Notes under the pieces: generated by a model | Told to the model about the DNA's origin: nothing | Seen by the model: only the letters and a program-made list of their open reading frames with translations | Databases searched by the model: none | From: Hyaloraphidium curvatum SAG 235-1 | Lineage: Eukaryota; Fungi; Monoblepharomycota | Assembly: GCA_025558095.1 (NCBI GenBank) | Contig: JAIVFI010000039.1 | Coordinates: 124,001 to 188,000 of the forward strand | Direction of reading: 5' to 3' | Length of the DNA: 64,000 nucleotides | Shown here: positions 3,800 through 26,155 of the stretch, piece by piece | How the letters are laid out: every line of letters begins with the position of its first letter | How positions within the stretch are numbered: position 1 is the stretch's first letter | Made by a program: the position numbers and the translations under genes

Positions 3800-5414
3800 A
3801 TGGCGGCCATGGAGCCGGCCTTCACGGACGCCGAGCTGCTCGCGCTCTTTCCCCAACCGCCCGGCTCCCCGCAGCCGCTCGCCGCCCGTCTCGCCCGCAC
3901 CGGCTGGGACCCCGAGGCCGCTGCTCTGCCGCTCGACCCGGTTTCCCCCGCGGTGCGGGCCGCAAACCCGCTGACCCCCGAGGAAATGATCCGCAGCCTG
4001 TCCCAAGCCAGCCCGGCGCTGGCCGGCCTCGTGCGGTACCAGCGGTCGCTGGCGTGGTTCGGGCGGCGGTACGACCTCGTGCGGCTGGGGTACTATGCCG
4101 TGTCGTTCGGCACGGCAATCTCGGGGGCGTGGGCGTACAACGACGGGCGGTTTACGGACGCGGCGCTGGGTGCGGCGACGGCGGCCCTCGTCATGAGCGG
4201 CGTGTTCCAGGTCGTCCCGTACGCGATAAGGAGGACGAGCACCGGGGGCGTCGCAAGGACGCTCGGGGTGCCCTTCTTCGCCAAGCCGAAGCCGGCCGAG
4301 TCGGGCAAGGAAAAGGACGAACAGGCCACGGCGCCGCGCCCGCCGGACTGGAGCCAGCACAACTGGTCAGGGCTCGTGAGGTGGCTGCAGCTCGTGGAGC
4401 GCGAGGGCAGCTCGTCGCCCATCCTCGCGCACGAACCGGACGACCCGCTGTGCCCGTGCCCCCTGCCCTCCTGTGCCGAAGGTACCGCGGCAGCCGTGCT
4501 CCGGTTCCGCATCCTGCACTACGCCATCCTCTTCCCCACCTTTTGCCTGGGACTCATGTTCTTCCCCTCCTGAACCGGCATGGTCACGTTCGGGGCGCGC
4601 TTCTGGGCCGCGCCGTGGAGCTGCGCCCTCGGCGTGCTCGCGGTCCTGGGCGTCTTCGCGTACTTCCTCACCGTGCCCTTCGTCCGCATCTCGGCCAGCT
4701 ACCCCTTGCTGCAGCTGGGCAACCGCATCCAGGCGCGGGCCATGTCGATGGCGCTCTGCTCCCTTTTGCGCGACCTGGACGGAGGCCATGGCGCTTCCGG
4801 AGCCGCCGATGACAAGACCAGCGAGCCGCAGCCCTACGAGCGACTGCACACTGCTCTCGCAGTAGCATGGCAGAGCCGGATCCCCATGTTCGCGACCAAC
4901 TCGGTCATCGCGACCATGCTTGCCGGCACGGTCTTTGTCTGCATCCCGATCAATGTGGTCGGTGTTCCGCCCCCGCACTCCCCACGCCCGCTGACGACCT
5001 TCTCGCCACCGGACTCAGATCGCCGGCGCATGCGTTCCGCTCTACATCCTCATGCAGATCCTCTTCCTCCTCTACGTCTTCCTCGTGGATCTCGTGAACG
5101 TCTCGGTGTGCAACGCCCAGATCGACACCGTCGCCTCCCTTTACCAGGAAGCCCGAACCGAGCTCCGCCGCGCCGCGCTGCGCCCCGGCCTGTCCTCGGA
5201 GCTCGTCGCGCGGATGCGGGGGCACGATGCGGTGCTGGAGGTGTTCATCGCCGCGGCGGGGGCGTCCAGGGCGAGGTTCCTGGGGTTCGTGGTGACGTTT
5301 GCCGCGGTGAGGAGCGTCGTTATCACTGGTTTCACCGTGGCCGTCGGCCTGTGGACGATATTCAGGTCGGCGGGGTACTTTGTGACGCTGGAGATGGCGT
5401 GCCCGTCGAGGTGA
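3800..5414 (+). pseudogene. 7TM receptor-like family copy 1 (7TMIC/GR-like candidate), with one in-frame TGA at 4571-4573 and an intron at 4958-5018
   Basis: ORFs 3800-4573, 4580- and 5052-5414 join into one ~515 aa protein colinear with the paralog at 10454. Shared motifs: LALFP, NDGRF, HxxxDPLCPCPLPxCA, PYxxLH, GxCVP, DLVN, RFLGF, TLxxxCP. Confidence 0.75.
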
Positions 5415-5958
5415 GCCCGCCGGTGGGGGAATAGACGATGGACGGCGGTCAGGACGCGGCGAGAACATTACTCCATATTCTATTCCTTGCTTTTGGACGT
5501 TTTGCCGGGGCTTTTGCCGGCCCTGGACCTCGTCCCAGAGGGTGGACTGGGATGCGGCGCAGTGGAGCGAGTGCCCCAAGGAGAGCGGCGCGCCGCTGCC
5601 CCTGAAGCTCGGCATCACGAGGGCCGCCACGGAGCGCAGCAAGGCGCAATCGCCCTACGTTGCCGTCGCGATCGAGACCGCCGATAAATTCGGACTGGAT
5701 CGCATGGCGCTGCCGACCAAGGACGGGATCTTGGTGCCGATGGGGTACGTCCCGAGCCTCGATCTGGGCTACTAGACCGCGATCGGGATGGGATGGCATA
5801 TAGCCCACCCAGCGGGCAAGCAGATGAAAAGATTGAAAGACGAGGTCGTGGGGAGAGACGGCGAATGAGTAGAGGTTTTCCCGGCGCCCGCCAGTCAGCC
5901 GCCGGTTCCCTTGACTTCTCTTGCCACCGAATCCGCAGCGCCACCCTCTCCCACGCAG

Positions 5959-8137
5959 ATGGCGGCCCGGCCCGAGTCCCCGCCCGGCGAGACGGGCTCG
6001 GACACGTCCGGCGAGGCGAGCACCGCGGTGCCCGACGGCGCCCCGCCCGCGGAGCTCGATGCGGCGCAGGACCCCGCGGCGGCCGACGTCTCCAAAACGG
6101 ACTCGAAGGACGGCTTCGCGGGTGACGCCCCGCCGGCCGACTCCAAAACGGACACGAGGAGCGCCGTCCCGGCCTCCGCCATTTCCGTCGACGCCAAAAC
6201 GGACGCCGCAGACCTGAAGAAGGACGCGCTCGCGGGCGACGGCGTCGAGGACGACCCGCACGCCGTCGTCCCCGCCCCCGACTCCCCCGCCGAGCCGGCG
6301 GAACCCTACACCACGACCCAGAAGCTGCTGGCCATCATCGCCCTCGCGATGGGCATGGTCCTCTTCACCATCGACATGACGCTCATCACCACGGCGCTGC
6401 CGACGATAGCGCGGGAGCTGGACGCCGCCGAGTCCTACCAATGGGTCGGCACGTCGTACCTGCTCACGTCGACGGCACTGGCGCCGCTGTGGGGCAAGCT
6501 CAGCGACGTCTTTGGCCGCAAGCAGCTCATGATCTTCAACTGCCTGCTGTTCACCCTCGTCTCGATCCCCTGCGCCCTCGCGCCAAACATCATCGTGCTC
6601 ATTGTTGCGAGGGCTCTGCAAGGCGTCGGCGGCGGTGGGATGCAGAGCATCGTCTTTGTCATCCTGACCGAGATCGTGACCATGCGGGAGCGCGGCAAGT
6701 ACCAGGGATTCATGATGTCGCTCAGCGGCATCTCGGCCGTCGTCGGGCCCCTGCTCGGGGGCGTGCTGACGCAGTACCTTTCGTGGAGGTGGTGCTTCTG
6801 GATCAACCGTGGGTTTCTGCTCGGCACCGCCGGCCGCCGCCGCTGACCTCCTTCCCAGTCCCCTTCGGCACCCTCGCCCTCCTGGGCTACTGGTTCTACA
6901 TCAAGGACCTTTCAAAGAAGTCCTCGATGCGGGAGAAGCTCTCCCGGATCGACTACCTCGGCTCCGTGCTCTGCATCACCGGCGTCACCCTCGTCCTGCT
7001 CGGGTTCACCTGGTCCGAGGGCGGCTGGACCACGGGGCAGTGTCTAGGGCCGATGCTCTCGGGGTTCGCGGTGCTGGCGCTGTTCGTGGCCTGGGAGGGG
7101 TACGGCGCCAAGGAGCCGAGCCTCCCGCTGATCCTGTTCCGCTCGTGGAACTTCACGTGGTGCATCGCGGCCACGTTCTGCCTGGGATGGGTGCTCCTGT
7201 CGCAGAACTACTTCCTCCGTACGTCGTCCGCTTCCCCCTCCACGGTTGCGGTTCTCACCCACCACCCCTGCCCGCAGCCTTCTACTTCCAGCTCGTCCGC
7301 GGGGCGACGCCCACCTCCTCGGGCCTGATGATGATCCCCCAGATCGTCTCGTGGCTCGTGGGCGCCATCATGATCGGCATCATCTCCTCCAAGACCGGGC
7401 GCTACGTTGAGTTCCCCAAGGTCGGGTACGTCCTCATGGCCGGCGGCATCGGCGCCATGGCGGCCTGGACGGCCGACTCGCACTGGGCCTTCGTGTACTG
7501 CATCGAGGTCGTGGTCGGTGGGTCCGTCCCCCTTGCCCGCGCGGGCGTGCAGCGCTGACGGCGCGACCAGGATTCGGCCTCGCCCTGTCGATCACCATGC
7601 TCACCGTCATCGTGCAAGCCGCCGTCGACCCCCGCGACATCGGCCCCGGCACCACCTTTGCCACCTTTGCGAGGTCGATCGCCGGGACCATCTCCATCGC
7701 CGTCTCATCCGCCATCCTCGGCAGCGTCACCTCGTCCACCTACGCGGGCCAGGTCCCCGTGCTGCAGTCGCAGTACGGCATCCCCCCGAGCGTGTCGTCG
7801 GCCTACATCTCCAGCTTCACGAGCGGCAGCCCCGCTCCGGCGGATCTGACGTCGGACCAGGCGGCCGCGCTGCACGGGGCGACGGTGGCGTCGTTCCAGC
7901 GCGGGATACAGATGGTGTTTGCGGCGCTGGTGCCGTTCGCGGTGGTGGGGTGGGTGGCGACCATGTTCCTCAAGGTGCGTTGTTCCGCGTCGGATGCGGT
8001 TCCGACGGGGCTGACGGGTCGGTCGGCAGCACATCCCGCTGGCGACAAAGGCCATGGGCAACGAGTCGAGGAAGGCGGGGGACAAGTCGGGGTACGGCAA
8101 GGAGGAGAAGATGGGCGGCCACTTGGAGATGGCATGA
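5959..8137 (+). CDS. MFS drug:H+ antiporter (DHA2, 14-TM type), about 5 exons
   Basis: Motifs DMTLITTALPTI, WVGTSYLL, WGKLSDVFGRK, RALQGVGGGG, GPLLGG and WRWCFWIN. Introns near 6809-6858, 7219-7277, 7518-7571 and 7975-8029. Start codon uncertain. Confidence 0.9.
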
Positions 8138-8192
8138 CGTCGAGGATCCTTTCTTGGGTGCGAGTGGAATAGACATACATCGCCGCGTCGGA

Positions 8193-9083
8193 CTAGAGCC
8201 TCACGCCCGCGGCGGCCAGCCCGGGCACCTCGGCCGCAAAATGCTCCGCCAGCTCCACGTAGGTCTCCCAGTACTCCACCCTCGCCCTTATCGGCATTCC
8301 CGCCTCGGCGGCCCTCGCTATCCTCCTCTCCAGGGCGAACCCGCGCCGCGCGAGGACCACGTCCGACGGGAGCAGCCGCGCAGATGGGCAGTAATCGTTC
8401 CCCCCGTCCCCAACGTACACCGCGCGCGCGTAAGTCCTCGGCGGCGCGGGTTCGGGAACGGGCGTGCCCGGCTCGACGCCGTACAAGAGCCGGTCCGCCT
8501 CCTCGCCCTTGCACAGGTTCTCGGGGCACCCGTTGGCGCACCTCTCGTGCCGCTTCCCGGCCGCGGGGTCGGCGTTCGTGCGGCGTTTGCGGATGCGGAG
8601 GCGGCCGAGGTGGTCCACGTGCGACGGGTTGGTCACGACGCCGGCGAAGCACGCCGAGAGCGGGGGGGTCTGCGCGTCGAGGATGGCGGAGATGTAGGCG
8701 TCGTTGGCGTCCGAGAGGATCACGGCGTCGGCGTGCGGGAGCGCGCCGAGCTGCCGCAGCAGACTGTCCATGGTCGCGTCGAACTCGGCCCGGGCGACGG
8801 CGGCGAGCACCTCGGGGGCGCCGACGCGGAGATGGTCCTGCGCCCTGACGAGCATCTCGTCCATGAGCTCTGTCCACTGGCGGCCCTCGCCGCGGACCAG
8901 CGCGGCGGCGGTGGAATTGTACTCTGGCAGGCCGAGCTGCACGAATATCTCGCGGTCCGAGTCGACGGGGAGGATCGTCTGGTCGAAGTCGAACATGACG
9001 AGCGTGCGGCCGGCTGCCCGCTCGGCCCGCCCGGAATCGCGGTCCGCGGCGTGCGAGCGCGTTAAGGAGCTCGGATCGGCCAT
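8193..9083 (-). CDS. PHOSPHO1/2-like HAD phosphatase (pyridoxal-phosphate/phosphoethanolamine phosphatase family)
   Basis: HAD motifs FDFDQTI, ILSDAN, CPENLCKG and YVGDGGNDYCP. Confidence 0.9.
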   Translation of the reverse strand: MADPSSLTRSHAADRDSGRAERAAGRTLVMFDFDQTILPVDSDREIFVQLGLPEYNSTAAALVRGEGRQWTELMDEMLVRAQDHLRVGAPEVLAAVARAEFDATMDSLLRQLGALPHADAVILSDANDAYISAILDAQTPPLSACFAGVVTNPSHVDHLGRLRIRKRRTNADPAAGKRHERCANGCPENLCKGEEADRLLYGVEPGTPVPEPAPPRTYARAVYVGDGGNDYCPSARLLPSDVVLARRGFALERRIARAAEAGMPIRARVEYWETYVELAEHFAAEVPGLAAAGVRL

Positions 9084-9334
9084 CGTTTCCGGGGATTCGA
9101 GGGAAAAGGCGCGACGCGTCGGCGGTGCGGCGGTGCCTGGCGTGGCGCGGCGTCCCCCACCGCCCGGCAGCAAGATTCTCCGTGTCGCCGTCCAGGCAAA
9201 GCAGCCCTCCGCCCGCCGCGCCCCGCCGTTCCCTCCCCTCTCCGCGCTTAATTGCGTCACGCCCCGCCCGAACCCGCCCGGCCGCCCTCCCCCGCGCCCG
9301 TAGTCCTCCCGAATCCCACCCAACCCCCGAAACA

Positions 9335-10250
9335 ATGTCCAAGGCCAAGGTCTGGGACGAGGTCCTCTACGACGTCAGCGAGCACATCGCCACCATCACC
9401 CTCAATGCCCCCGAGCGCATGAACACCATCTCTGGGCCCATGCTGAACAAGCTCGCGGAGCTGATGCTGCAGGCCGACCGCGACCCCGAAGGTGGGCTGC
9501 ACCCCTTCGCGGACGACCGGACACCTCTCACCGAGTCTGTTAGTCCGCTGCATCGTGCTGACCGCCCGCGGCCGTGCCTTCTGCGCCGGCCTGGACCTCC
9601 GCGGCGCGCGCGAGGGCAACACCGGCCTGCAGGGCGCCTCCACCTCGACCGACATCGACGTGCGCTCCACGCCCCCCACGGTGATCTACAACCTCGGCAC
9701 GCCGACCATCTGCGCCATCAACGGCTCCGCCGCCGGCTACGGGATGGACACCGCCCTGGTCTGCGACATCCGCGTGATGGCCAAGGGCGCCAAGCTCGCC
9801 GCGGCATTCACCAAGCGCGGCGTGCTCCCCGAGTCGGGCGGCACGTGGCTGCTCCCCCGCATGATCGGCTGGTCGCGCGCGGCCGAGGTGATCTTCACCG
9901 GGCGCACGCTGTCGGCGGACGAGTGCCTCGCGCTCGGCCTGGTCTCGCACGTGGTGCCGGACGACCAGGTGCAGCAGGCCGCGAGGGCGCTGGCCAAGGA
10001 GATCGCGAGCAACGCGCCGCTGGCGGTGCAGGCGAGCAAGCGGATGATGAGGATGGGGATGAGCGAGACGTTCAACGACCACGTGCACCACGTGTTCCTC
10101 CAGGTGCGGCGGACGGCGGTTGTTGGTGCTTCTTCGGCTGACTCGCGGGTTCCGTGGCGACAGCTCCTGCCGCTGCTGCGGTCTGAAGATTCGATGGAGG
10201 GCATGAAGGCGTTCCTCGAGAAGCGGCAGGCGGCCTTCAAGGGCCGCTAG
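9335..10250 (+). CDS. Enoyl-CoA hydratase/isomerase (crotonase) family, 3 exons
   Basis: Motifs ITLNAPERMN, RAFCAGLDL, PTICAINGSAAGYG, PESGG and C-terminal EGMKAFLEKRQAAFKGR. Introns about 9492-9543 and 10104-10163. Confidence 0.9.
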
Positions 10251-10453
10251 GCGGATGGCCCCCGCGCAAAGCATATAAAGGCGTATCTGAATCAATGAAC
10301 GGTTGTTGCGCCGGAATGGCTTGGATCCAGAATCGGTTGTGTGCGGAGGTTCTGCGCAGAAACGTCGAGGCAAACGTCCCCCCGCCTGCCCTCTCCCGCT
10401 GGCCCGGCCACAGTCGGCATTCTTTGCGAAACGCCCCCTCCTCATCGTAGACA

Positions 10454-11995
10454 ATGGCCTGCGAGTCCGCCGCCGCCGACCTCTCCGGGGACAAACCCCG
10501 TCCCGCGCCCTTTTTCACGCCGCCCGAATGGCTGGCCCTGTTCCCGTCCCGCGTGGAGCGGGCCCCGGGGAGCGTCTGGGACGCCGTGGCGGGATCCGAC
10601 CCCCTCTCCGCGATGCCGGACCGGGTGCCGCTGGCGCGATCCGCGCTGCTCGCCGAGCTGGGCGGGGCGTCGACGGCCGCGGGGTTCCTCGTGGGGCTGC
10701 AGTTCCGGCTGCAGCCCTTCGCGGCGCGGCTGTGGGCGCGCATGCTGCCGTATCTCGCCCTGTTCGTCGCCGTGTTCGACCTCGCGTGGGTCTTCAACGA
10801 CGGCCGCTTCGGCACCGCGCAGCTCGTGGCCGCCACCGTCGCCTTCAACATGGCCGTGGTGGTGTTCGGCGCCGTGCTGCCGCTCAGCGCGTCGTACCGC
10901 TCGAGCTTCCGCCCCCGATCCCCCGCATCGCCCCGGATCCAACCGGCGGACGACGAGTCGGGCCACGCGTTCGCGGGGATCGCACGGTTCCGCCAGCTGG
11001 ACCGCGCCGAGGGCCGGGAGTCGCGGCTGCTCGCCCACGACGCGCGCGACCCCCTTTGCCCCTGCCCCCTCCCGGGCTGCGCCGGCAGGACCTTGTCGAG
11101 GGCCGGAACGCTGCGCGCCCTGGATTGCGCGTTCCGGATCCCGCTGCTGGTGCTGTTGATTGTCGGCGTCGAATGGACGAGCGTGGTGACGCTGGGCGAC
11201 CGCCTGTGGGCCACCTGGTACGGCGCCACCCTGGCGGCGCTTTTCTTCGCAAGCGCCGCGGTGCTGCACGCGCCCAACCTGCTTGGACGGACGCCGGCCA
11301 ACGTCGCCACGCTCGGGCTGGGCCTGAGGTTGCACCAGCGGGCCGTGACGATCGCGCTCCGTTCGATGCTGCTGCGCTACTCGGACGCCCTGTTTCCCGA
11401 TCCCGACGCTGGCGGCCCCGGAAAGTTCCCCGATCCCGGTCCGGGCGCCCAGGACGAACCGTACCTCGTCCTGCACGCCGCTCTGGCCTCCACGTGGCGC
11501 TCCCGCCTCCCCTTCCTCTCCTCCGGCGGCCCGCTGATCCTCAGCGTGTTTCCCGTCTCCGCCATCCCCCTCGTCGCCAACGCCATCGCGGGGGGCTGCA
11601 TCCCGGCATTCACGCTGTACACGCTGCTCTACCTGCTCTACGCGCTGGCCCTGGACGTCGTCAACCTGGCCGCCGCGAACGCGCAGATCGCCGCGGTGAC
11701 GGAGAAGTTCCTGGACGCCTCGGACGCCGCGCGGACCCTCCTTGCGCGGGCGCAGCAGCGCCCCGCTCCCCTTGCTGATCCCGCGGCCGCGGGCGCGCTG
11801 GCCAACCACGCCGGGCTCCTCGTGCAGTGCGCCGACGCGGAGAGGTTCAAGGGGCGGCTGTTCGGGTTCGCCGTGGACGCCGGGGTCGTGAGGAGCGCGT
11901 TCCTGACCTCGTTCACGGCCGCGGTGGGGTTCGTCTCGCTGCTCAAGGCCGCAGGGCTGTCGTTCACCCTGGACGCGGTCTGTCCGTCGCCGTGA
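10454..11995 (+). CDS. 7TM receptor-like family copy 2 (intact, intronless, 513 aa)
   Basis: Uninterrupted ORF with seven hydrophobic segments, all family motifs, and C-terminal RLFGFAVDAGVVRSAFLTSFTAAVGFVSLLK. Confidence 0.8.
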   Translation: MACESAAADLSGDKPRPAPFFTPPEWLALFPSRVERAPGSVWDAVAGSDPLSAMPDRVPLARSALLAELGGASTAAGFLVGLQFRLQPFAARLWARMLPYLALFVAVFDLAWVFNDGRFGTAQLVAATVAFNMAVVVFGAVLPLSASYRSSFRPRSPASPRIQPADDESGHAFAGIARFRQLDRAEGRESRLLAHDARDPLCPCPLPGCAGRTLSRAGTLRALDCAFRIPLLVLLIVGVEWTSVVTLGDRLWATWYGATLAALFFASAAVLHAPNLLGRTPANVATLGLGLRLHQRAVTIALRSMLLRYSDALFPDPDAGGPGKFPDPGPGAQDEPYLVLHAALASTWRSRLPFLSSGGPLILSVFPVSAIPLVANAIAGGCIPAFTLYTLLYLLYALALDVVNLAAANAQIAAVTEKFLDASDAARTLLARAQQRPAPLADPAAAGALANHAGLLVQCADAERFKGRLFGFAVDAGVVRSAFLTSFTAAVGFVSLLKAAGLSFTLDAVCPSP

Positions 11996-12290
11996 ACGGC
12001 GGCGATCGGGTGGTCTTCGGGGGGCGGGGCTCCGTTGCAAGCATGCGATTGGGCTTGAGACGGCGTGTCGGCAATATTACATTGCCGCTGCGGCCGAGAG
12101 CGTTGAACATTGTCCGGGCAGAGAGAGCATCCAGCGCGGCGGCCCCAGTTGTGGGGCTGGGAACGGGTTCGGATGCGTTGCGCCGAGTCCGATGCTCGCC
12201 CCGAATCCGGCACCCTGCTCCGTGTCGGCGCACGCCCCGCGGGCCCGTCGCGATGCGGGCACGCCACGCCCCGGCAGCCTCGGCGCCGTG

Positions 12291-13421
12291 ATGGAGACCG
12301 CGGACACCGCTCGCCGCGGGTCGCCCGGCGCGTTCGGCGCGCTGCCGCACGAGCTGCTCGTCCGCCTCCTGGCCTTCCTCGCCGCGGACCCCGTCGCCCT
12401 CTTTGCCGCGCGCGCCGCGTCGCCCGCGCTCCGCATCGCCGCGTCGGACCCGTCGCTGTGGCGCGAACTCTCCGTAACGCACGAGCTCGGCCGCCGGGCG
12501 CGCCACGAAATCAAGGCGGTCCACACCGTGCTGGCCGAGGAGGTCATCGACCTCCTGCAATGCTGCGCCGATCTCGCGGCCGCCCAGGGCGTTGCCGGGA
12601 TTCGCTCCGCCCTCTTCGACTTTCGCCGCGACGCGTTCGCCCCACGCGAATCCTCGGCCATCCTCGCAACCTTGGCGGGACGACACGGCGCGTGGTTGGA
12701 GCGTCTCCACGTGCCCGACACCTCTGAGCTGCCCTTTGCCGCGCTGGAGGCGTTCCTGGCGCACCCGCCGCCCCGGCTGGCCGAGCTGGACCTGTTCCTC
12801 TCCCCGCCGTCGGGAGACGTCGTTTCGGACAGCCAGTGGCGCTCCCTCGGCGCCCTCATTTTCGCGCATCCCCTGCGCAAGCTCGCCCTGCGCGGGCCCG
12901 AGGGCATCGCCTCAGTCCTGCGCCGCAGCTCCGCATGCCCCACCCTCGAAGCCCTGCACCTCGCCGAATCCGCGTGCGAAACCCTGCCGCCGTACCTGGC
13001 GGCCAGCTTCCCGCGCCTCGCCGAACTGTCCCTCGAAGCTCCCTACCTGTACGCCGTCGGCGGCGCCTCCTCCTGGGCCTCGCGGGGCATCGCGCCCAAC
13101 CTCCCCGCGACCGTCCGTCTGCTCCGCGCCGACATGAGCGACACCGACGCCCCCGATCACGAAGCCTCGGGGTTCCTGCGTGCCTTCTCATCCCGCGGAC
13201 AATTCGACGGCGTGGAGGAGCTGGAGCTGGCCGTGCAGGCGTTGGAGATGACGGTCGGGGAGGCGGAGGAGGTGCTGCGGGGGTTGTGGGCTGCGAGGGA
13301 GTCCAGGCGCGGGAGGGAGCAGGGGTGGAGGGCGCTGCGGAAGGTGACGATCACCGCAGAGGGGAGGGCGATCGTGTCCGAGGGACCGGGAATGACGGTG
13401 GAGTGCTTTCCAAACGAATGA
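12291..13421 (+). CDS. F-box / leucine-rich-repeat-like protein
   Basis: N-terminal FGALPHELLVRLLAFL...DPSLWREL F-box pattern followed by LxxLxL repeats. Confidence 0.7.
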   Translation: METADTARRGSPGAFGALPHELLVRLLAFLAADPVALFAARAASPALRIAASDPSLWRELSVTHELGRRARHEIKAVHTVLAEEVIDLLQCCADLAAAQGVAGIRSALFDFRRDAFAPRESSAILATLAGRHGAWLERLHVPDTSELPFAALEAFLAHPPPRLAELDLFLSPPSGDVVSDSQWRSLGALIFAHPLRKLALRGPEGIASVLRRSSACPTLEALHLAESACETLPPYLAASFPRLAELSLEAPYLYAVGGASSWASRGIAPNLPATVRLLRADMSDTDAPDHEASGFLRAFSSRGQFDGVEELELAVQALEMTVGEAEEVLRGLWAARESRRGREQGWRALRKVTITAEGRAIVSEGPGMTVECFPNE

Positions 13422-13473
13422 GGTGTTCCTACGGTACACCATGCCCAGAACTTGAAGCCCCGAAAGAATCCCG

Positions 13474-14751: not shown

Positions 14752-15329
14752 GCTTGTGCGTCTTGGACAGCGGTTTGCTTCCTGGTGTTGGTGTCTCCCG
14801 GCAGAGATGCGCCACAAACGCCGCCGCAAGGATCCGATTTGCCGCATTGACTTTGCCCCACCAAAGTCCAAATCTCTATGGTCTCGCCACATGGCGTCGA
14901 CGAAATGATCATGCTCCCGGGCGAAAGTCCTGCGGGCAACGGCGTTCCGGGACGCGGGGGTCGCGCGCCCCGATCGTGTCCGCGCGGGCCGGGCGGAGCA
15001 GCGAGCTTCACACAGGACAGGCCGCTGATCCGCGGGCATCGGTGGCAATTTTAGCTTGTGCGAGGCGATCGAATGCAGGAAAGCGGGGGTACGTATTGCC
15101 TTTGGGCGCATGCCCATATCCAATGTATCGGGCCAGTGGAACCTTACCCAAACGCCTTCGCGCAGTGATGAATGGCAGCGATGGCAGTCTGCCGGCTGTC
15201 GTAACACCCTTGATTGCGCGGACCGCCTCCTGGCCGGTGCCGCATCCGTGGTCAGCAACGGCCATCGCCGTGCGGGGCTGGTGCAAGACCCACCCATCTC
15301 CCGCCCGAACCACGCCGGCCGATTCCGCG

Positions 15330-17263
15330 ATGGGGACGTGCCGTGTGCTTTTCCTCCTCCTCGCGCTCGCGCTGCTCTCTGCGCTCTCTGCGGACGGCGC
15401 CGAGCGCGGCCGCGGGGGCGGCGGGAAACCCCCCAAGTCGTCGTACGAGGCGTACGACGCGCCGCTGCCCGAGGACGGCGGCGGCGGCGGCGGCAGGGGG
15501 CCGCCCCGTGCGGGCGGCGGCGGCGGGGCGCCCGACGGCCCGGCATGTACGCCCGCGCGCTCGCAGCCCGCCGCGCTGAACCCGGCCGTGTCGCTGCCGA
15601 ACCGCGTGCTCCGCAACCGCGACCCGACGTTCCCGCCGCTCATCTACTTCGAGGTCGGCCGCGAGCTGGGCGGCGGCGCGTTCGGCAAGGTCATGCTGGC
15701 CTCGCTCAAGGCCGCGAAGCCGGCCGTGCTCGACACGCTCGAGGAGAAGCCCGCGCGCTTCTTCGCACTCAAGGAGCAGAGCTACGACCACGTGATCCCG
15801 TGCGGCAACGACCCGCGCCCCGCGATGGTGCGTCGGTCTTCGCGCACTGAGCCGCAGTTCGTGGGTTGCCCCCGCGTCCCTCCGCGATCACGATGTGTAG
15901 CCAACCGCTCCCCGGTTCTGCAGATGGAGCGGGTCAACGGCGGGCCGTACATCATCAGGTATTGGGGCTCGTGGTACAGCCGCAGCCTGGATGGCAAGAA
16001 AAAGCGGGCGCACTTCACGATCGCCATGTCCAAGGCGGTTTCGGACCTGGAGAGCGAGCTCCTTGGCACGGGGCGGTTCTACAAGCGCCCCGGGATCCCG
16101 GAGGACAAGGCCAGGATCATCATCGGGCAGCTCGTCATCGCCATCGGCTTCATGCACTCCAAGGGGATCATCCACCGCGACTTCAAGCCCGGCAACATCC
16201 TGCTCGACGCCAAGCGCCGGCCCATGGTCGCCGACTTTGGCTGCGCCATCGACGCCAACCGGGTGGAGCAGGACCTGTCCGAGGCCGGCGTGTGCGACTA
16301 CCGCATCCGTGCCCCCGAGGCCATGGTCTACCCCGCGTTCATCGACGCCCCCAAATGTGGGTTCCTCATTGGCGCGGGATTCCCCCGGCTGATTTTGCAC
16401 CCCCAACGCTCCAGACAGCTACGAAGCCGACTGGTGGTCGCTGGGCGTCGTCACGCACAACATCCTCACCGGCACCGGCCAGCTCGAGAGGGGCGACACC
16501 AACGGCCCCTTCGTGTCCCGGCTGGCCGGCATGGCCCGCTATTCCCAGTACTGGTACGACCAGCACAAGAACCAGGCGACGCCCCGGCGGGAGGACTACC
16601 TCGACCGTGCCAAGCTGGCCCGGCTGAGCCCCGACGCGCGGTCCTTTGTCCTGGCGCTGCTCGAGTTCGATCCGGCGCGCAGGCTGGGCACCTACTCGGG
16701 CGACGGCAAGAAAGGTGCGCGGTCCCCGCCGCCGCGCGCGACCGCGCTGATCCCCCGTGCCAGGCTGGGAAGCCGTCATGTGCCACCCGTTCCTCGCCCC
16801 CCTGGACCCGAACCGGCTCATGGCCGCCGGCGCCAGGCAGGCCGAGGAGCTCGGCGCGCCCCTCGTCTTCGACACGCGCACGGGGAAGCCGCCGAATCCC
16901 AAGGAGCCGCTCGAGGCGCAGCTCGCGCCCAAGGCGCCCAAGGTCAGCGAGGTGCGGGCGGCGCTCAAGGCGGCGTCGGACGACGCGTACGCGGCGTACG
17001 AGCACCTGGTCGAGGACAGGCAGCCGCCCAAGAAGGGGGCCGAGGATCCGTACCTCGAGTACGACGAGGCGGCGGACGGGGGCAAGGGCGGGGCGGCGTC
17101 GGGCGGCAAGAAGGGCTCCGGGGACGAGGGGGGCAGCTACGAAGAGTACGAAGAGCTGGCGGATGCGGCGCCCGTGGATCCGGCGCCGGCCAAGGGGGGG
17201 AAGAAGAGCGGGGGGAGGAAGCCGTCCAGGCGCGGGTTGGGGTGGGCGGCGCTGGCGAACTGA
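15330..17263 (+). CDS. Ser/Thr protein kinase (AGC-like) with N-terminal signal peptide, 4 exons
   Basis: Motifs LGGGAFGKV, FALK, HRDFKPGN, DFG, APE, DWWSLGV, LLEFDPARRLG and HPF. Introns at 15828-15923, about 16357-16414 and about 16714-16763. N-terminus MGTCRVLFLLLALALLSALSADG. Confidence 0.85.
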
Positions 17264-17622
17264 CCCCGCGGGGTTCGGGACTTTCGGGCGGGTTTCGGAG
17301 CCTTGGATGCAGGTCGAGCATGCCGGGGTCGGCACTTTCGGGGCAGTGCCGACCGCCTTCCTATTGTATCTAGCTGTTTGCTGTTCGCTTCTTGGCAATT
17401 GACACGGTTGCTGGTTCGCAATGTTGACCGCGCTGCATCGGTGTCGCAGCATCTTACAAGACATGACCTGAATAACCGATTATTGCCCATACCGGATGGC
17501 GATCCTCGTCCTGGGCTTGGAATCTTCTTTGGAAGCAGGGCGGATGCGATTGGGGGGCCGTCTTGGGGCCGTCTCCCACTCCGGAAAAAACACGCGTAAC
17601 TCGAGCCCCCCAACACGCAACG

Positions 17623-19257
17623 ATGGCCGCCCAGGAGATCAAGTACCCGCTGAAATGCAAGGCGGCGATCCTGACCGAGTGCGTGGCCCGCCGGCTTTGG
17701 CCCCGCTGCGCGTTCTGACCGCGCCGCGTCGCGGGGGACGGAACACCGCGACCTCAGGTACAACAAGCCGATGGAGATCAAGGAGGTCGAGTGGGACGGT
17801 GGACGGCGGTGAATCGCGTCGAATGGAAGCGTTGCTGACCGGGATGCGCTACAGAACCCAGGGCCAACGAGTGTGGGTCACTCGTGCCGGGGGGGACAAC
17901 GGGGTCGGGCGCCGGGACGCTGCCGGACAGCCCCCTCGGCGGCCATCTCCCGCGCTTGCCAATGGCTGACCATTGTTTGCGGCTCGTTAGGCCTCGTTCG
18001 CGTTCACACCACCGGGGTTTGCCACTCGTGGGGCCTCCCACCGTGCTCGGCCCCTTCACCGCTTATGTCCCCCTCCCTGCAGCGACCTGCACATCATGAA
18101 AGGAGACCTTTCGGCTTTCACCAGCGTGCCAATGTTGCTGGGCCATGAAGGTGCCGGCACGGTCGTCCAGGCCGGCCCGGGCGTCACGCGCCTCAAGAGC
18201 GGCGACAGGGTCATCTTCCTGTTCGTGCCCAACTGCGGGATCTGCGGGCAGTGCCAGATCGGGCGCCCCGGCAATTGCCAGGGCCGCCGCGCGACCTCCG
18301 GTGCCTCGCACGACGGGACCTTCCGCGTGAGGCTGGACGGCAAGGGCCTGCCCAGGATGACGTCGCTCGGCCTGTTCTCCGAGTACGTCGTGGTCTCGGC
18401 CGAGCAGCTGGTCCACGTCACGGACGACGAGGTGCCGCTCGACCGCTGCGCCCTCGTGGGCTGCTCCGTCATGACCGGTGTTGGCGCCGCCATGAACACG
18501 GCCAAAGTCGAGGTGATTGATCAACCGTGGCACGAACTCTTTCTTCGTCCCTGACGCGCCTTCTCTTTCTTCCCCCCCCTTTGCTCCCGCTGACAGATGG
18601 GCTCGACCGTTGCCGTGGTTGGCTGCGGCGGTGTCGGCCTCAACGTAATCCAGGGCGCACGCAACCTGAACGCCGCCACCATCATCGGCATCGACTTGCT
18701 CGACAACAAGCTCGAGTACGCGAAGCAGTTCGGGTGAGCATCTTTCGCCTGGCCGCACCGTGACCGAGCGAGCTCATTTCGGGCCACCCACAGCGCCACC
18801 CACGTCATCAACGGCAAGGACAAGGACACCGTAGCCGAGGTCCTCAAGATCTGCCCCAACGGCGTGGACTACGCCTTCGACGCCATCGGCAATAGCAAGG
18901 TGCTCGAGCAGATCTTCAACATGCTGACCCCCGGCGGGTCGGCCATCGAAGTCGGCGTCGCGCCCCAGCAACAGATGTCGAGCCTCTCGCCGCTCATGCT
19001 CAACCTCAAGGAACTCAAGATCCTCGGGTCGATGTACGGCAGCGCCCGTCCCCAGCTCGACATGCCGAGGCTGCTGGCGCTCTACAAGCAGGGTGGGTTC
19101 GGCCGGGCTGCCCATTGGACTTTCCGCCTCACTCTCCTGGCCAGGCCGCCTGAAGCTCGACGAGCTCATCTCTAAGACCTTCACGCTGGAGCAGATCAAC
19201 GAGGGCTTCGAGGAGCTCAAGGCAGGCGGTATCGCGCGTGGCGTTATCAAGATGTGA
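17623..19257 (+). CDS. Zn-dependent alcohol dehydrogenase (MDR, class III-like), many exons including an 18-nt microexon (17855-17872)
   Basis: GVCHSDLH assembled across an intron; GHEGAG, structural Zn site CGICGQC...[11 protein letters not shown] and GCGGVG. Confidence 0.9.
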
Positions 19258-19400
19258 TGTAAGAGACGCGGAAAATCTTTTCCTTTTCATCTCCCGTTTG
19301 GATCGATCGCCAGGTAGAGGCGGCGGCGGCGGAGCTCGGCCGTGGGCTGGCCCCCGCAAGTCGCGCCTAAACTTTGTTTCGCAACCCACTTCCCGACCAA

Positions 19401-20600
19401 ATGCTCTCGCGATTGAAGCCCGGGACGCGTCATTCTTTGCTTTCGCGCCCTGCGCGTGGTCTGCTGCTTCCGCGCCGAGGCAACGCGCCGCCGCGGGCTG
19501 CTTTCGCGTCCGCCGCGCGGTCGCTCCCGCTGGCGCATGGCGCGCCCATCGCCGTCGTAGGGGGCTCGGGCTTCGTCGGCCGCAATATTGTCCGGCTGCT
19601 CAAGGAAAGCGGCGAGACGGAGGTCGTGAACATCGACCTCGCTCCGCCTCCGGACCTCTATACCGCCGATGCCCCACTCGTCAAGGCGGACGTCACGGAC
19701 CCGAAGGCAATAAAAGCCGCGCTAGCGAGGCAGCCCGGCGAGAGGCCATTCGGGGCCGTGTTCCACGTCGCCGCGTACCTGTCGTTCATGGACCGCTTTC
19801 CCTCGGAGCTTCCGAAATCCATGGCCGTCAACGTCGGAGGAACCAAGAACGTGATCGAGGCCTGCAGGGAGCTGAGCATACCGTACCTTGTGCAGACAAG
19901 CACCTCGCATGTCTGCGTCGGGCAGGACATCTGCCCGATTCTGGACGGCGACGAGTCGACACCCTACACGGAGAAGCCCGTGAACCACTACTCTCTTTCG
20001 AAGGTACTAGCGGAAAAGGCCACCCTGGAGGGCGACGGCGCCTCCCTTGCCTCCGGCAACGGAACCCTCGCGACCGCCTCGGTACGGCCGACTTCGAGCG
20101 TTTTCGGCTTCCTGGATGCCATCTCAACGGAGAGCTACATCCGAGTTCGGACGATGTTCCCTCCGGTGAGGCCCGAGAACAAGATTGACTTTGTGCACGT
20201 CGAGAACGTGGCCTTGGGACACCTCCTTGCGATGCACGCGCTCCGTTCGGGAACTCCGGGCGTGCGCGGCCGCGCTTTCTTTGTTTCAAACGACGAACCC
20301 ATGTCGTTCCCTGAGTACGCTGTGCTGCTATCTTCGCATATCCCATCGTTCAGAACGATTGATACCCGGGTCATCTACCCGATGTATGCCCTATCCGACG
20401 TCTTCCGGCGCTTCGGAGGACGGTTGCCAGGGGACATGGGGATCCTCAGCCTCGCGGTCTGGAAACTGCACAACTTCGAGTATACTTTCAGCTGTACAAG
20501 GGCGAAGAGCGTGCTGGGATACAAGCCCATGTTCAGTGTGTCCGAGGCCTTGGACCGGACGATGCGGCAGTACAACGATGCCGGGATGCTGGCTGGATAG
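19401..20600 (+). CDS. 3-beta-hydroxysteroid dehydrogenase/NSDHL-like extended SDR, tandem copy 1
   Basis: Motifs GGSGFVG, VFHVAA, VNVGGTKNVI, YSLSK and DFVHVENVALGH; intronless. Confidence 0.85.
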   Translation: MLSRLKPGTRHSLLSRPARGLLLPRRGNAPPRAAFASAARSLPLAHGAPIAVVGGSGFVGRNIVRLLKESGETEVVNIDLAPPPDLYTADAPLVKADVTDPKAIKAALARQPGERPFGAVFHVAAYLSFMDRFPSELPKSMAVNVGGTKNVIEACRELSIPYLVQTSTSHVCVGQDICPILDGDESTPYTEKPVNHYSLSKVLAEKATLEGDGASLASGNGTLATASVRPTSSVFGFLDAISTESYIRVRTMFPPVRPENKIDFVHVENVALGHLLAMHALRSGTPGVRGRAFFVSNDEPMSFPEYAVLLSSHIPSFRTIDTRVIYPMYALSDVFRRFGGRLPGDMGILSLAVWKLHNFEYTFSCTRAKSVLGYKPMFSVSEALDRTMRQYNDAGMLAG

Positions 20601-20796
20601 TTCGTGCTCAATTCCTGCGGCGGGGAGACATCACCAGGTTAGAAGCAGACTAGATGCAGTATGGAATTCCTCGCCCATGTCCAGTCCGTTTGTCGGCCTG
20701 GGCTATGGTCGTGTCGTTGGCGCAAGGGGCCATCGGGCGGCGTTGCGCCAAGCATTTCGCCTAAATTTGAGCACTTCCAACCCACACCGGACCGCA

Positions 20797-21966
20797 ATGC
20801 TGGCGCGGCTGACGCCAGCGACGCGTACGTTGCTTCCTCTGCGCCACGGGCGCGTGCCCGGGCGGGCTACTTTCGCGTCCGCCGCGGCGTCGCTCCCTCC
20901 GGCGCACGGCGCTCCCATCGCCGTCGTCGGCGGCTCGGGCTTCGTCGGCCGCAACATTATCCGTCTGCTCAAGGAAAGCGGCCAAACAGAGGTCGTGAAT
21001 GTCGATCTCGCTCCGCCTCCGGGCCCGTACGCTGCCGATGCCCCGCTCGTCAGGGCGGACGTTACGGACCCGAGCTCTATCACGGCAGCCCTTGCAAGGC
21101 AGCCCGGCGAGAAGCCTTTCGGAGCCGTGTTCCACGTCGCTGCATATCTTTCATTCATGGACCGGTTTCCGTCGGAGCTTCCCAAGTCAATGGCGATCAA
21201 CGTCGGAGGGACCAAGAACGTCATCCAAGCCTGCAGGGACCTGAACATACCGTACCTCGTGCAGACGAGCACTTCGAACGTCTGCGTCGGCCTCGACATC
21301 TGCCCGGTCATTGACGGAGACGAATCGACGCCCTACACGGAGAAGCCCGTGAACCACTATTCTCTTTCGAAGGTGGAAGCGGAGAAGGCCACATTGGCAG
21401 CCGACGGCGCCTCCCTCGCTTCCGGCAACGGCACCCTCGCCACTGTTTCGATCCGCCCGACCTCGAGCGTGATCGGGTTCCTGGACGGCCTGGCGACGCA
21501 GGCCTACATCAAGACGCGCACCGCGTTCCCGCCCGTGAAGCCCAACAGCATGATGGACTTCGTCCACGTCGAGAACGTTGCCCTGGGCCACCTGCTCGCC
21601 CTGCACGCGCTGCGGTCAGGCGCTCCTGATGTGCGCGGCCGGGCCTTCTTCGTCTCCAACGACGAGCCCATGCCGTACCCCGAGTACTTCGATCTGCTCT
21701 CGTCCCGCATCCCTTCGTTCAGGGTGCTCAACCCGCGGATGATCTACCCGCTGTACGCCCTTTCCGACGCCGTCAGGCGGTTCGGGGGCCGGCTGCCCGG
21801 GGACGTGGGGATGTTGAGCCTCGCGGTTTGGCAGCTCTCGAATCTCGAGTACACTTTTAGCTGCGCGAGGGCCAAGAGCGCTCTCGGATACAAGCCGAGA
21901 CTGAGCGTCGCCGAGGCCTTGGATCGGACCATGGGGCAGTACAGGGAGGCCGGGATGCTGGCCTAA
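20797..21966 (+). CDS. 3-beta-hydroxysteroid dehydrogenase/NSDHL-like extended SDR, tandem copy 2
   Basis: Same motifs as the upstream copy and colinear with it, with high similarity. Confidence 0.85.
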   Translation: MLARLTPATRTLLPLRHGRVPGRATFASAAASLPPAHGAPIAVVGGSGFVGRNIIRLLKESGQTEVVNVDLAPPPGPYAADAPLVRADVTDPSSITAALARQPGEKPFGAVFHVAAYLSFMDRFPSELPKSMAINVGGTKNVIQACRDLNIPYLVQTSTSNVCVGLDICPVIDGDESTPYTEKPVNHYSLSKVEAEKATLAADGASLASGNGTLATVSIRPTSSVIGFLDGLATQAYIKTRTAFPPVKPNSMMDFVHVENVALGHLLALHALRSGAPDVRGRAFFVSNDEPMPYPEYFDLLSSRIPSFRVLNPRMIYPLYALSDAVRRFGGRLPGDVGMLSLAVWQLSNLEYTFSCARAKSALGYKPRLSVAEALDRTMGQYREAGMLA

Positions 21967-22068
21967 TTCGGCGTGCAGGGGGTTTCGCGGGAGCCCTTGA
22001 AAAGACGGACGTGCGATCACACTCAAAGTGTAGTGCACGGGACAGCATACATGGCCTGCGAGCGTGCA

Positions 22069-22854
22069 TTACCCGACGTTCCCCGTGCAGGCCTGCTGCA
22101 GCGTCACGTACGTCCCCGCTCCCCTCAGCACGCTCCACAGCCCGATGCCGACGGTGAACAGGGTGACCAGCACCGTCCGCACGACGCCGAACCCGACGGG
22201 GTAGCCCATAAACCTGGCCCTGTACGCATCCACGTCGCAGAAGGAGGCAAGGACGGCCTCGGCGGCGTGGAGGGTGCGCGCTGCCGCCTTGCGGTCCGGG
22301 GAGGTGGCGTTGGCGACGGCCGGATCCGAGAGCGAGACGCGGATCTCGAGGCGGGCTGTGCGGTAGAGGTCGCGGATGGAGGAGATGCCGGCGTTGGAAG
22401 CGGCGTGGTTGACAAGGTCGATGAGCCCGTGCTGGAGCGTAGCCTTGTACGATGTCCACCACATGCTCCCGAGCGTGACCCACGCGCCAAGGAGCAGACC
22501 CGTTACCGTCCCGGTCACGAGCTCCGCCCGTGCAAATTCCGCGCCTCTAAGCGTCCAGACGCCGGTCCAGGCGAGCACCGAGACCACGAACAAGGCAGCG
22601 AGGAAGAAGAGCGCGAAGCCGATCGGCAGCGTGGCCCACAACTGCACGCGCAGGAGCGCACCCAGAGTCGGGCTGACGTCGCGCAGCACCCGCAGCATCC
22701 TCTCGCGCGTCAGGGGCCGCGCGGCCCGCAGCGACTCGGCGCGGTCCAGCGGAGGCTCGGCGGTGCCCAGCGCGGGTGGAACATTCGGGAACGCGGGAAA
22801 CAGGGCCAACCAGTCCGCCTCCGACAGCTCCAGAGTCGGAGGCACGTTTAGCAT
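22069..22854 (-). CDS. 7TM receptor-like family copy 3, an internally deleted mini form (261 aa)
   Basis: N-terminal DWLALFP and two TM helices fused in frame to IDLVNHAASN...RARFMGYPVGFGVVRTVLVTLFTVGIGLWSVLRG...TLQQAC. The CPC loop and TM3-5 are absent. Confidence 0.7.
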   Translation of the reverse strand: MLNVPPTLELSEADWLALFPAFPNVPPALGTAEPPLDRAESLRAARPLTRERMLRVLRDVSPTLGALLRVQLWATLPIGFALFFLAALFVVSVLAWTGVWTLRGAEFARAELVTGTVTGLLLGAWVTLGSMWWTSYKATLQHGLIDLVNHAASNAGISSIRDLYRTARLEIRVSLSDPAVANATSPDRKAAARTLHAAEAVLASFCDVDAYRARFMGYPVGFGVVRTVLVTLFTVGIGLWSVLRGAGTYVTLQQACTGNVG

Positions 22855-23090
22855 CGTGTATTGCCGGGAAACGGTCTGCCGCTGCCCGTCCGACGGAGTT
22901 CCAGAAAGATGGCGGCAGTCCCTAGAATTGTCCCCCGCCTCCAGGTTCGGATCCAGCCCACTCACGGGCGTGGAACGGGACCGTTCCTCTCTCTGCGTCT
23001 GCAAGGCGGCGCAGAGCTCGATTCTTCCCGCACTCCCGTCCAGCGCCGTGAACCGCGGCAGACACGTCAACGCAGCGACCGAAGGCCTAG

Positions 23091-24545
23091 ATGTCCTCAA
23101 CAAAGCCTGGAGACGCCCCTGCGGCACCGCTCTCGCTTTCTCAGCGCGAATTTCTGGCGCTTTTTCCCGTGTCGCCTGGCGCCGGAGGCCCTCTCGACCC
23201 CATTCCGCATGACCCCGCCGCGGAGCTGCGCGAGTCGGACCCGCTTTCGCGCAGTGCGCTGCTCGACGCGCTCTCGCCGGCACCGCTTCTCGCCTTCTTC
23301 GTTCGTGCGCAGCTCTTTTCGCGGTATGCGGCGCGATTCGTTCGTTGGCGCGGCGCCGTCATGATTGGTCTCGGATGGGCCCTTCTGTCGGTTCAGTGGG
23401 TCGCAAACGACGGCCGTTTCACGGCTCTAGAACTTGCTTTTGGCACTGCTTCAACGGCATCCTTCGGTGCTATGTGCCTCGTGCTGTACTTTGCGAGCCA
23501 TGCTTTTGTTTCGCGCCTCTCCGTGCCCAGGGACATGTCGCACCACCCTCTTGCCGCTTTTGCGCGGGTTGCGCAGCTTCGGAGGGATCAGCCGGATTCG
23601 ATCCTCATTCAGCATGACGATACCGACGCGCTGTGTCCCTGTGCGGCCCCTGCTTGTGCGGGTGGCCTTCTTGCCCGAGCTTCCCTACTGCGAGCTCTGG
23701 AGTTTGCTGCTCGTTTCAGCCTCATCAACTTGTACTTCATGAGCTTCTTTCTGTGGATGCCCGCTGTGACTTTCGCTTCTTTCACTTGGACGACCCCTTG
23801 GGCGGCCACCATTTGTGCATTTGGTATCGCAGCAGTGCTTGAACTCAACCTTGGCAACATTCTTGCTGCCTCGCCTCAGAATCTTGCCGGGCTGCAGCTC
23901 AGTCTCCGCTTGCACAACCGTGCATGCACGCTTGCCATTCGCGACCTTGAGTTGCGTTGCACCGCCCTTCTACATGAGCAGACAGGCATCTGCGATGTTT
24001 CTACGGACAAGATAGCCACTTCAAACGAGCTTTACGTCGTGCTCCACGATCTGATGGTTCCCACCTGGAGGAGCCGCATCCGGTTGCTTGCATTCGGATC
24101 ACCGACCCTCTGGTTCACGTATTTCTTTACCCCCATTTGGTTCATCGCCTTCATTGCCCTGGGCAACTGCATACCGTTCAGCACTATTGCCGGCGTGCTC
24201 TACCATCTCCTTTTGTTCGCCATCGACCTCGCCAACTTTGCCGCCAGCAACTCGCACATCTTCGTCATTAACAACCTGTACCTTTCGGCGCAGGCCAAGC
24301 TCCTCCGCCTGCGGCACGACGCGGATTCCCGCGCCGCGCGCAGGGAGACCGGCGACCACGCCGCCATCTTTGCGTCCTTTACCGCCAACTCGGAAAGCTC
24401 GCTGGCCCGCTTCCTCGGATTCCCGGTCTCGCCTTCGGGGGCACGGAGCGCGGTGGCGACGCTGCTGACCGTTGCGGTCGGCCTGTGGAGTGTGCTGAGA
24501 GGCACAGGGGTCAGGGTGACGATGAACACGACGTGCGGAGGCTAA
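23091..24545 (+). CDS. 7TM receptor-like family copy 4 (intact, intronless, 484 aa, lower GC)
   Basis: Motifs FLALFP, NDGRF, HDDTDALCPCAAPACA, LYVVLH, GNCIP, DLANFAASN and ARFLGFPV...TLLTVAVGLWSVLRG. Confidence 0.8.
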   Translation: MSSTKPGDAPAAPLSLSQREFLALFPVSPGAGGPLDPIPHDPAAELRESDPLSRSALLDALSPAPLLAFFVRAQLFSRYAARFVRWRGAVMIGLGWALLSVQWVANDGRFTALELAFGTASTASFGAMCLVLYFASHAFVSRLSVPRDMSHHPLAAFARVAQLRRDQPDSILIQHDDTDALCPCAAPACAGGLLARASLLRALEFAARFSLINLYFMSFFLWMPAVTFASFTWTTPWAATICAFGIAAVLELNLGNILAASPQNLAGLQLSLRLHNRACTLAIRDLELRCTALLHEQTGICDVSTDKIATSNELYVVLHDLMVPTWRSRIRLLAFGSPTLWFTYFFTPIWFIAFIALGNCIPFSTIAGVLYHLLLFAIDLANFAASNSHIFVINNLYLSAQAKLLRLRHDADSRAARRETGDHAAIFASFTANSESSLARFLGFPVSPSGARSAVATLLTVAVGLWSVLRGTGVRVTMNTTCGG

Positions 24546-24650
24546 TTGAATGTACTAGTAGTCGCTTTACATCCTTTTTGACATGCCGTTCCAATGGGCG
24601 ACCTCTCCGTCCTTTCTCGGTCGTCGCAGGTCCTTCCAATCTGTAATCTT

Positions 24651-26155
24651 TCAACTCAGGCATACAGTATCCAACACAGCCGTTACCCCAAAGCCTCGCG
24701 CCAAACCCCACGCCGCAAACGCTACAGTCAGCATTGACACAACGAGCCCCCTCAACGATCCGAAGCTGACCACGATACCGAGAAACCTCCGCCTGGGGGC
24801 ACGTGCCTCGCCCAAGTACCGTTCCAAGGCTGCAGAGTGGGCAGCGAGATGGAGAGCTACAGGTGGCGCGGGGTTGGAGGGGGGGAAAGCAGCCACGAGA
24901 AGATCACGGGTTGAGGTCAGGGCGGTGGAGTAGAGGTCGCTGAGAGCCGTGACTTCGGCGTTTGCGGTGGCGGCGCGCCAGAGATCGCGAAGGAGGACGT
25001 ACAGGAATTGGGAAAGGTTAACCAACGTCCAGGCTGGAACGCAGCTCCCGATGATCTGCCAGTGGGCGGTACATAGTGAATTAGGGAACCGTGCTCCGCA
25101 AGTTTGCGGGTAGGACGTCGATCAAATCAACGCTACACACTCACAATGCTGCTCGTCATCAGGGTGACGAGGAATGCGATGAATACCGGGTCCAAAAAAG
25201 GAATGTTGTAGTACGCGAAATCATGAGACCACCTCTGGCGCATCTCGGCATGTAGCTGCATGTAAGGTTCCTCGGCGAAGCCCCAGATCTCCTCTGCGGT
25301 TTCAAAGGGTTTCCCGTGACGCACAGCCATCCGGGCACGGTCGAGAAACACGACGAGTGCACGGCGCATGAGCCTTCTACGCACTCGGCCTTCCAGCCTG
25401 ATAAGAGCAAAGGCCGGTGGCGGAAGTAGAAGGGTTCCAGTGAGAGCTGCACAACATTCGCAACTGGTGGATCAGAGGCGGGAAGCAGAGCAAATTAGCA
25501 AACAATGCCAAGTCCAAGCTGCAGCCCATCAATCCGGTCTACCCACGGAAGAGCGCTGCGAGGATGGTACTCCATGCGTTGGACCACACCTGCGGGAGCC
25601 CGAAAAGCGGTGTCCACGTCAAGAAGAGGAGGCAAGCGGCAATTAAGCACATCCGAAAGATTCCGTCGAATAGCCAGAAGCAGGCATGTGAAGTCATTAG
25701 CGAGCCAAGAGCATCGCGCACCTGCGCAGGTGCATTCCGGCTCGCTGTCGACGTGGTCCAGCATACTGCGGTCTCCCGATTTGTCCGTGCTCTTCTGAAC
25801 ACAACGAGCCCAGGCCGGCAACAAGGCAAGCTCTGCAATCCACGACTGCACGATGTGGCCCCGAATGGGTCCGGGGTAGAAGTTGCCCCACAAAATGGCC
25901 TGCAGTGCGGCAAGTCTGCTTGGAAAGAGGCCGACCTCCTTTAGGACGACCATCTGGCCCAAAAGGAACAGCAAAGGGACTGAGGAGCAAAAGAGAGCCA
26001 CCAGAACACCCGGCAGCGGGGTCCGACGGGCGCGGCGGCTCCCAAGGCCCGGGCGCGGGCGGCGGCAGCGGGAATGCCGCGGCAAAGTCCGCTGCCGAGA
26101 AGAAGCCGCGCTTTGCCGCGTCGCCAGGCGGCCCCAAGTCGATCATAACGTCCAT
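24651..26155 (-). pseudogene. 7TM receptor-like family copy 5, frameshifted and degenerate
   Basis: Family motifs are spread over different frames: DFAAAFP, HVDSEPECTCAGARC, LTWTP, EPYMQLH, then intron 25056-25144, then GSCVP and RFLGIVVSFGSLRG...LDTVCLS. GC is reduced. Confidence 0.7.

Follow-up and report, generated by a model that had tools for sequence, protein, structure and literature searches.

Massive expansion in Hyaloraphidium curvatum of a new protein family very probably of the seven-transmembrane ion channel superfamily

Five gene copies at one locus

Hyaloraphidium curvatum is a tiny freshwater fungus of the Monoblepharomycota, and the stretch of its DNA analysed here (the window) comprises 64 kb of strain SAG 235-1 (assembly GCA_025558095.1, contig JAIVFI010000039.1, positions 124,001 to 188,000 of the forward strand). 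A first-pass annotation had noticed here a group of seven-helix proteins resembling the insect odorant receptors (OR) and gustatory receptors (GR), which are channels of the seven-transmembrane ion channel (7TMIC) superfamily. The genes are part of a new fungal family, massively expanded and very probably of that superfamily, and a profile hidden Markov model (HMM) built from 44 family members locates exactly five copies in the window, all within 3800-26155 and none elsewhere (Table 1). The five paralogues of the annotation are real, but copies 1, 3 and 5 are damaged, leaving 2 and 4 as the intact ones, and the motifs it had ascribed to all five are not all common to them: LALFP is exact in four of the five and NDGRF and LCPC in three, copy 3 having neither NDGRF nor the His/Cys motif described below. 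Because the full-length window copies share only 32-34% identity, they are old paralogues, and a recent tandem array is ruled out by the same divergence; the best-scoring matches of genome protein searches place their nearest kin elsewhere, on different contigs.

The damaged copies differ in their state of decay. The spliced translation of copy 1 has a single internal stop, at codon 258, and the inactivation, if real, would be recent, since the GC content at third codon positions (GC3) is still 0.89. Two further family loci (L012, L030) each have a lone in-frame stop in a gene that is clean elsewhere, clear replacement of a conserved Trp being seen only in window copy 1. The predicted introns of copies 1 and 5 occupy the same position, and other genome copies are likewise split near profile position 366. 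Copy 3 lacks profile positions 145-379, that is, transmembrane helices (TM) 3 to 5 and both flanking inner loops, and retains the N-terminus, TM1-2, TM6, part of the cytosolic anchor and TM7, with a GC3 of 0.89. No second full-length match to this short form was present among the genome matches listed. With assembly and pore parts kept, copy 3 could be a modulatory subunit, though it is no less likely to be a pseudogene of recent date or an error of assembly.

Table 1. Family copies, their main features and neighbouring genes in the window (EL3, third extracellular loop; ORF, open reading frame; pLDDT and pTM, model confidence scores)
Feature	Positions	Strand	Basis or remark
Copy 1, gene of full length (517 codons) with 7TMIC fold, two exons, one in-frame TGA	3800-5414	+	HMM over profile 7-360 and 360-493
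Copy 1, TGA at family-conserved Trp codon position (WT..VT motif)	4571-4573	+	sequence and alignment
Copy 1, predicted intron, 61 nt, phase 0, GT..AG, TM5/EL3 junction	4958-5018	+	sequence prediction
Copy 2, intact, intronless, 513 aa	10454-11995	+	profile HMM
Copy 3, open 261-aa frame, in-frame deletion fusing TM2 to TM6	22069-22854	-	HMM 8-144 then 380-492, contiguous in DNA
Copy 4, intact, intronless, 484 aa	23091-24545	+	AlphaFold2 pLDDT 92, pTM 0.91
Copy 4, His/Cys motif H175, D179, C182, C184, C189 in cytosolic TM2-3 loop	23613-23657	+	95-99% conserved in 172 proteins
Copy 4, Cys360 (TM5-6 outer loop) and C-terminal Cys482	24168-24170; 24534-24536	+	each 99% conserved
Copy 4, best-conserved stretch in the family: hairpin (438-447) and TM7b (448-471), equivalent of the pore helix	24402-24503	+	entropy, DSSP
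Copy 5, frameshifted relic, fragments in three frames	24651-26155	-	profile HMM
Copy 5, last exon, still open	24651-25055	-	69% identical to annotated paralogue
Copy 5, predicted phase-0 intron, TM5/EL3 junction	25056-25144	-	sequence prediction
Two tandem 3-beta-HSD-like (PF01073) genes	19374-21966	+	first confirmed by Pfam
F-box-like protein	12192-13421	+	
Three ORFs of 439-460 aa	26372-27709; 29753-31135; 117-1436	-; +; +	no Pfam match

Topology, fold and superfamily

AlphaFold models were made for copies 2 and 4, and the anatomy is given in copy 4 numbering. Peaks of the family-averaged hydropathy match the helices of both models, which bears out the seven hydrophobic helices of the earlier reading as well as its alternation of short TM1-2, TM3-4 and TM5-6 loops with long TM2-3, TM4-5 and TM6-7 loops, the outer loops measuring about 5-9 residues and the inner ones about 64-77. 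A cytosolic N-terminus, also proposed earlier, is predicted by the positive-inside pattern together with an outer C-terminus, the segments on the N-terminal side (N-terminus, TM2-3, TM4-5, TM6-7) carrying on average 7.2, 6.5, 9.7 and 7.7 Lys and Arg residues against 0.5, 0.4, 0.1 and 1.2 in those of the opposite side. The N-terminal region (1-83) ends in a helix (65-81) that precedes TM1, lies inside the structurally aligned range and is a candidate position of the N-terminal re-entrant loop (TM0). TM1 (84-105) and TM2 (112-135) are followed by the first inner loop, with a helix (155-166) and then the His/Cys motif, a candidate Zn or redox site. TM3 (about 201-227) belongs to a helix starting at 190, TM4 (236-259) is extended as helix 265-296, a cytosolic helix (314-328) leads to TM5 (337-358) and Cys360, and TM6 with its extension spans 363-410; these long cytosolic extensions of TM4, TM5 and TM6 have equivalents in the copy 2 model. 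TM7 is split in both models, in copy 4 into 7a (414-432), a hairpin (438-447) with two short strands around G443, and 7b (448-471), as assigned by DSSP. Cys360 and the terminal Cys482 would both lie outside under the N-in topology and are accompanied in the copy 4 model by short strands (360-362 and 475-477), making them a candidate disulfide pair. In every structural feature of 7TMICs that could be checked, the modelled proteins agree with published feature lists (bioRxiv 2023.08.30.555482, PMC12635824).

Fold searches point to the same superfamily. The top 8 of 48,161 structure chains retrieved with the copy 4 model are insect ORs and GRs, and all eight OR/GR representatives fall within the top 8 for one model and the top 11 for the other, aligned end to end. 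The first-pass annotation had named matches to transporters or G protein-coupled receptors (GPCR) as evidence against its reading; Foldseek probability is 0.6-0.98 for ORs and GRs and at most 0.2 for transporters with both models. Candidate folds of these two kinds were rejected: the N-out rhodopsin-like fold of GPCRs reaches a TM-score of about 0.2 to GPCR clusters and is missing from the top 50 VIA matches of either model, and the LeuT/APC transporter fold reaches about 0.1 with a root mean square deviation of about 30 Å. In the ESM Atlas, TM-scores reach 0.56-0.58 with proteins of cnidarian, echinoderm and chlorophyte origin, compared with 0.43 for a GR and 0.2 for GPCRs, and the language-model neighbours of both intact copies include DUF3537, DUF267/SRR and 7tm_7. 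Pfam gave no match in single copies or in the 44 members, and a sequence search of the PDB with the family profile returned nothing relevant. On models and fold searches together, the assignment of the family to the 7TMIC fold and superfamily is very probably correct, and models, fold searches, topology and copy number alike support the earlier reading as a 7TMIC chemoreceptor channel repertoire. As a separate observation, the Atlas feature search with either intact copy places a TMEM39B cluster (PF10271) next to DUF3537, at a score of 0.93; this may hint that TMEM39 is a relative of the 7TMICs so far overlooked, or the match may be a generic one among membrane proteins.

The closest systems are the insect ORs and GRs (AaegOR10, 8v02; ApisOR5/Orco, 8z9z/8z9a; MhOR5, 7lic; BmGr9, 8vc1; DmGr43a, 8jm9), with 7-12% identity to the fungal proteins. 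The latter are about 100 residues longer, with a structured N-terminal region, the His/Cys module of the inner loop and an invariant terminal Cys. As the annotation had stated, the GR motif TYhhhhhQF is absent (0 of 44 members in the profile alignment). In its presumed register only a Thr (T460, 96% conserved) is kept, followed by a small-polar residue (Ser/Gly/Thr) at 467 and an aliphatic one (Val/Ile/Leu) at 468, and these two residues might take the place of Q and F at the gate. The GR-like (GRL) proteins of chytrids, represented by GRL1 of Spizellomyces punctatus and S. palustris with one gene per species (PMC7746228), are likewise 7TMIC candidates in early-diverging fungi with only one position of the TM7 motif kept; no sequence link to them was seen, though no direct comparison was made, and the fungal family described here has hundreds of genes where they have one. 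Plant DUF3537 proteins (PF12056) share the topology class and are language-model neighbours (0.91-0.92), with 4-12 members in the plant families; PF12056 found no match up to E=1 in the 44 members and none in the genome, in a search without a working control. The first inner loop is about 55-85 residues long, compared with more than 300 in PHTF (Class-B eukaryotic 7TMICs; bioRxiv 2023.08.30.555482), and no PHTF Pfam match was found among the 44 members. By motif, the family would thus be placed outside GR/GRL, and by Pfam and loop length outside DUF3537 and PHTF.

Family size, range and selection

The host genome is intron-containing and comprises 31.9 Mb in 55 contigs. Genome protein searches scored 83-146 of 666-892 candidates, and size was instead estimated by counting motifs. 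There are 435 occurrences of HxxxDxxCxC, compared with 40 in a reversed control, and 88% of known members carry it, giving about 450 loci, while the stricter HxxxDxxCPCxxxxC occurs 252 times against 0, far above chance, and is carried by 61%, giving about 410; a DNA pattern for TM7 was too unspecific for counting (265 against 133). These carrier fractions come from high-scoring members and copies without the motifs are missed, so that the true count may exceed the estimate. The family would therefore comprise about 410-450 loci, intact and damaged alike, in agreement with the expectation that it is large genome-wide. Two loci (G000:C30:69283-70389 and G000:C48:24832-25938) have identical scores, which suggests a duplicated segment or haplotig, and such cases could slightly inflate the counts.

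The family also occurs outside H. curvatum, as far as sequence matches allow its range to be traced. A profile search of 1.84 billion representatives returned 471 clusters at 50% identity, and among 30 checked from the best 150, 28 are of H. curvatum and two derive from sequencing run SRR26194948. The source of that run is another fungus, related to H. curvatum: its GC content is 54%, and a DIL-domain gene next to a family copy shares 65-73% identity with the one in H. curvatum. It has at least three family copies (L061:5001-6569, L062:2163-5656), two of them adjacent, with all motifs kept. Three word-indexed homologue searches, which have little bearing on range, returned 3-4 H. curvatum proteins each, and metagenome contigs scanned with copy 4 alone gave no match.

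The 12 closest pairs among 41 intact genes have non-synonymous divergence (dN) of 0.25-0.42, synonymous divergence (dS) of 0.69-1.23, the latter approximate given a mean GC3 of 0.83, and dN/dS of about 0.3-0.4 (Nei-Gojobori), indicating purifying selection on the family. The claim that conservation is best at TM7 holds on two measures: column entropy across 140 proteins is 1.7-1.9 bits in TM7b and the hairpin against 2.8-3.1 bits in TM1-6, and in 11 of the 12 pairs non-synonymous divergence is 0.10-0.18 in TM7b and the C-terminus against about 0.25-0.46 in TM1-4. Because median pairwise identity is 27% and the tree (FastTree) is star-like with long terminal branches, the family is a radiation of old date in which genes are still being duplicated and lost. 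Intronless genes and genes carrying the phase-0 TM5/EL3 intron coexist in it, which suggests intron loss or retro-duplication.

Proposed function and alternatives

The fold, the topology signature, the size of the family and the selection acting on it stand as computational results. With moderate confidence, the proteins are most likely ligand-gated cation channels that sense small molecules outside the cell. On the model of insect ORs and GRs, four subunits would assemble through a cytosolic anchor formed by the TM4-6 extensions and TM7a, TM7b would line the central pore of the tetramer, and a ligand bound in an outward pocket among TM1-6 would open the pore to cations, leading to depolarisation or Ca2+ entry; pore helix and anchor would be common to the paralogues and the pockets would vary between them. 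In the cytosol, the His/Cys3 motif would probably hold Zn and form a module with a structural or redox-sensitive role, and a Cys360-Cys482 bond would probably tether the C-terminus to the TM5-6 loop beside the gate. H. curvatum is a non-flagellated, non-motile, rhizoid-less unicell of unclear lifestyle (PMC6899921, PMC8371127), and in the absence of a flagellum the channels probably serve to control growth, sporulation or metabolism and not chemotaxis.

Reported non-animal 7TMIC repertoires are small, with a single gene in each of two chytrids, at most six in protists and 4-12 in plants (PMC7746228), whereas the German cockroach has 431 GR genes, reported as the largest insect set (PMC6175461), a number matched by the fungal loci in a unicellular 32-Mb genome. 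The text of a 2023 tree-of-life screen confines fungal 7TMIC matches to Chytridiomycota and Blastocladiomycota and mentions no such expansion, while its data files may list a few members; no paper joining 'Hyaloraphidium' with 'gustatory receptor' was found. The balance of evidence leans towards an independent radiation on the insect scale (400 or more genes) that gave a non-motile single-celled fungus its own ligand-gated chemoreceptor channels of 7TMIC type, with a new Zn/redox-type cytosolic module. A large sensory repertoire of 7TMICs would then be seen for the first time outside animals, and chemical sensing would be an old capacity that the superfamily can put to use again. With its hundreds of paralogues, whose pockets vary while the pore is conserved and many of which are intronless and easily cloned, the family permits a direct test of whether non-animal 7TMICs are ligand-gated channels; it would also offer a handle on the lifestyle of Hyaloraphidium.

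The same molecular mechanism could serve non-self recognition or defence, the channels sensing molecules of bacteria, parasites, grazers or incompatible cells and triggering Ca2+ signalling or cell death. Large, fast-evolving fungal gene families are often immune-like, and a very large, dispersed birth-and-death family with pseudogenes in a non-motile organism would suit this role, which is nevertheless unlikely: Pfam scans of the 44 members reveal no effector domain, whether NLR, HET or another, and the star-like tree, long terminal branches and dN/dS of about 0.35 do not obviously reflect a recent arms race. Non-gated proteins of the same fold, whether solute or metal permeases or PHTF-like organellar proteins whose His/Cys site binds a transported or sensed metal, are similarly doubtful, since conservation is highest in the pore helix and lowest in the pocket region, a pattern that receptors would show, and PHTFs are conserved low-copy genes (PMC9998090). 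That the proteins are an unrelated seven-helix family, their likeness to ORs and GRs being convergent or a helical-bundle artefact, would fit the very low identity of the structural alignments, non-significant Foldseek E-values and TM-scores of only 0.3-0.4 to solved ORs and GRs in the Foldseek alignment; it is quite improbable, given that the models of two 33%-identical paralogues rank targets alike with nearly full coverage, that the hairpin-split TM7 and anchor helices are present, that Atlas TM-scores exceed 0.5 to three other eukaryotic clusters and that DUF3537, SRR and GR clusters turn up independently. Non-functional proliferation, suggested by the many intronless, dispersed copies and the damage to three of five in the window, is scarcely credible in view of the low dN/dS, the high GC3, the motifs kept in a second species and the open frames of most top-scoring loci (a sample biased towards intact genes), and mobile-element cargo in particular is rejected, no flanking repeat or element common to the 44 loci having been found.

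Beyond the receptor-like family, the window holds the other genes of Table 1; paralogues of the window proteins have been deposited as hypothetical proteins of H. curvatum.
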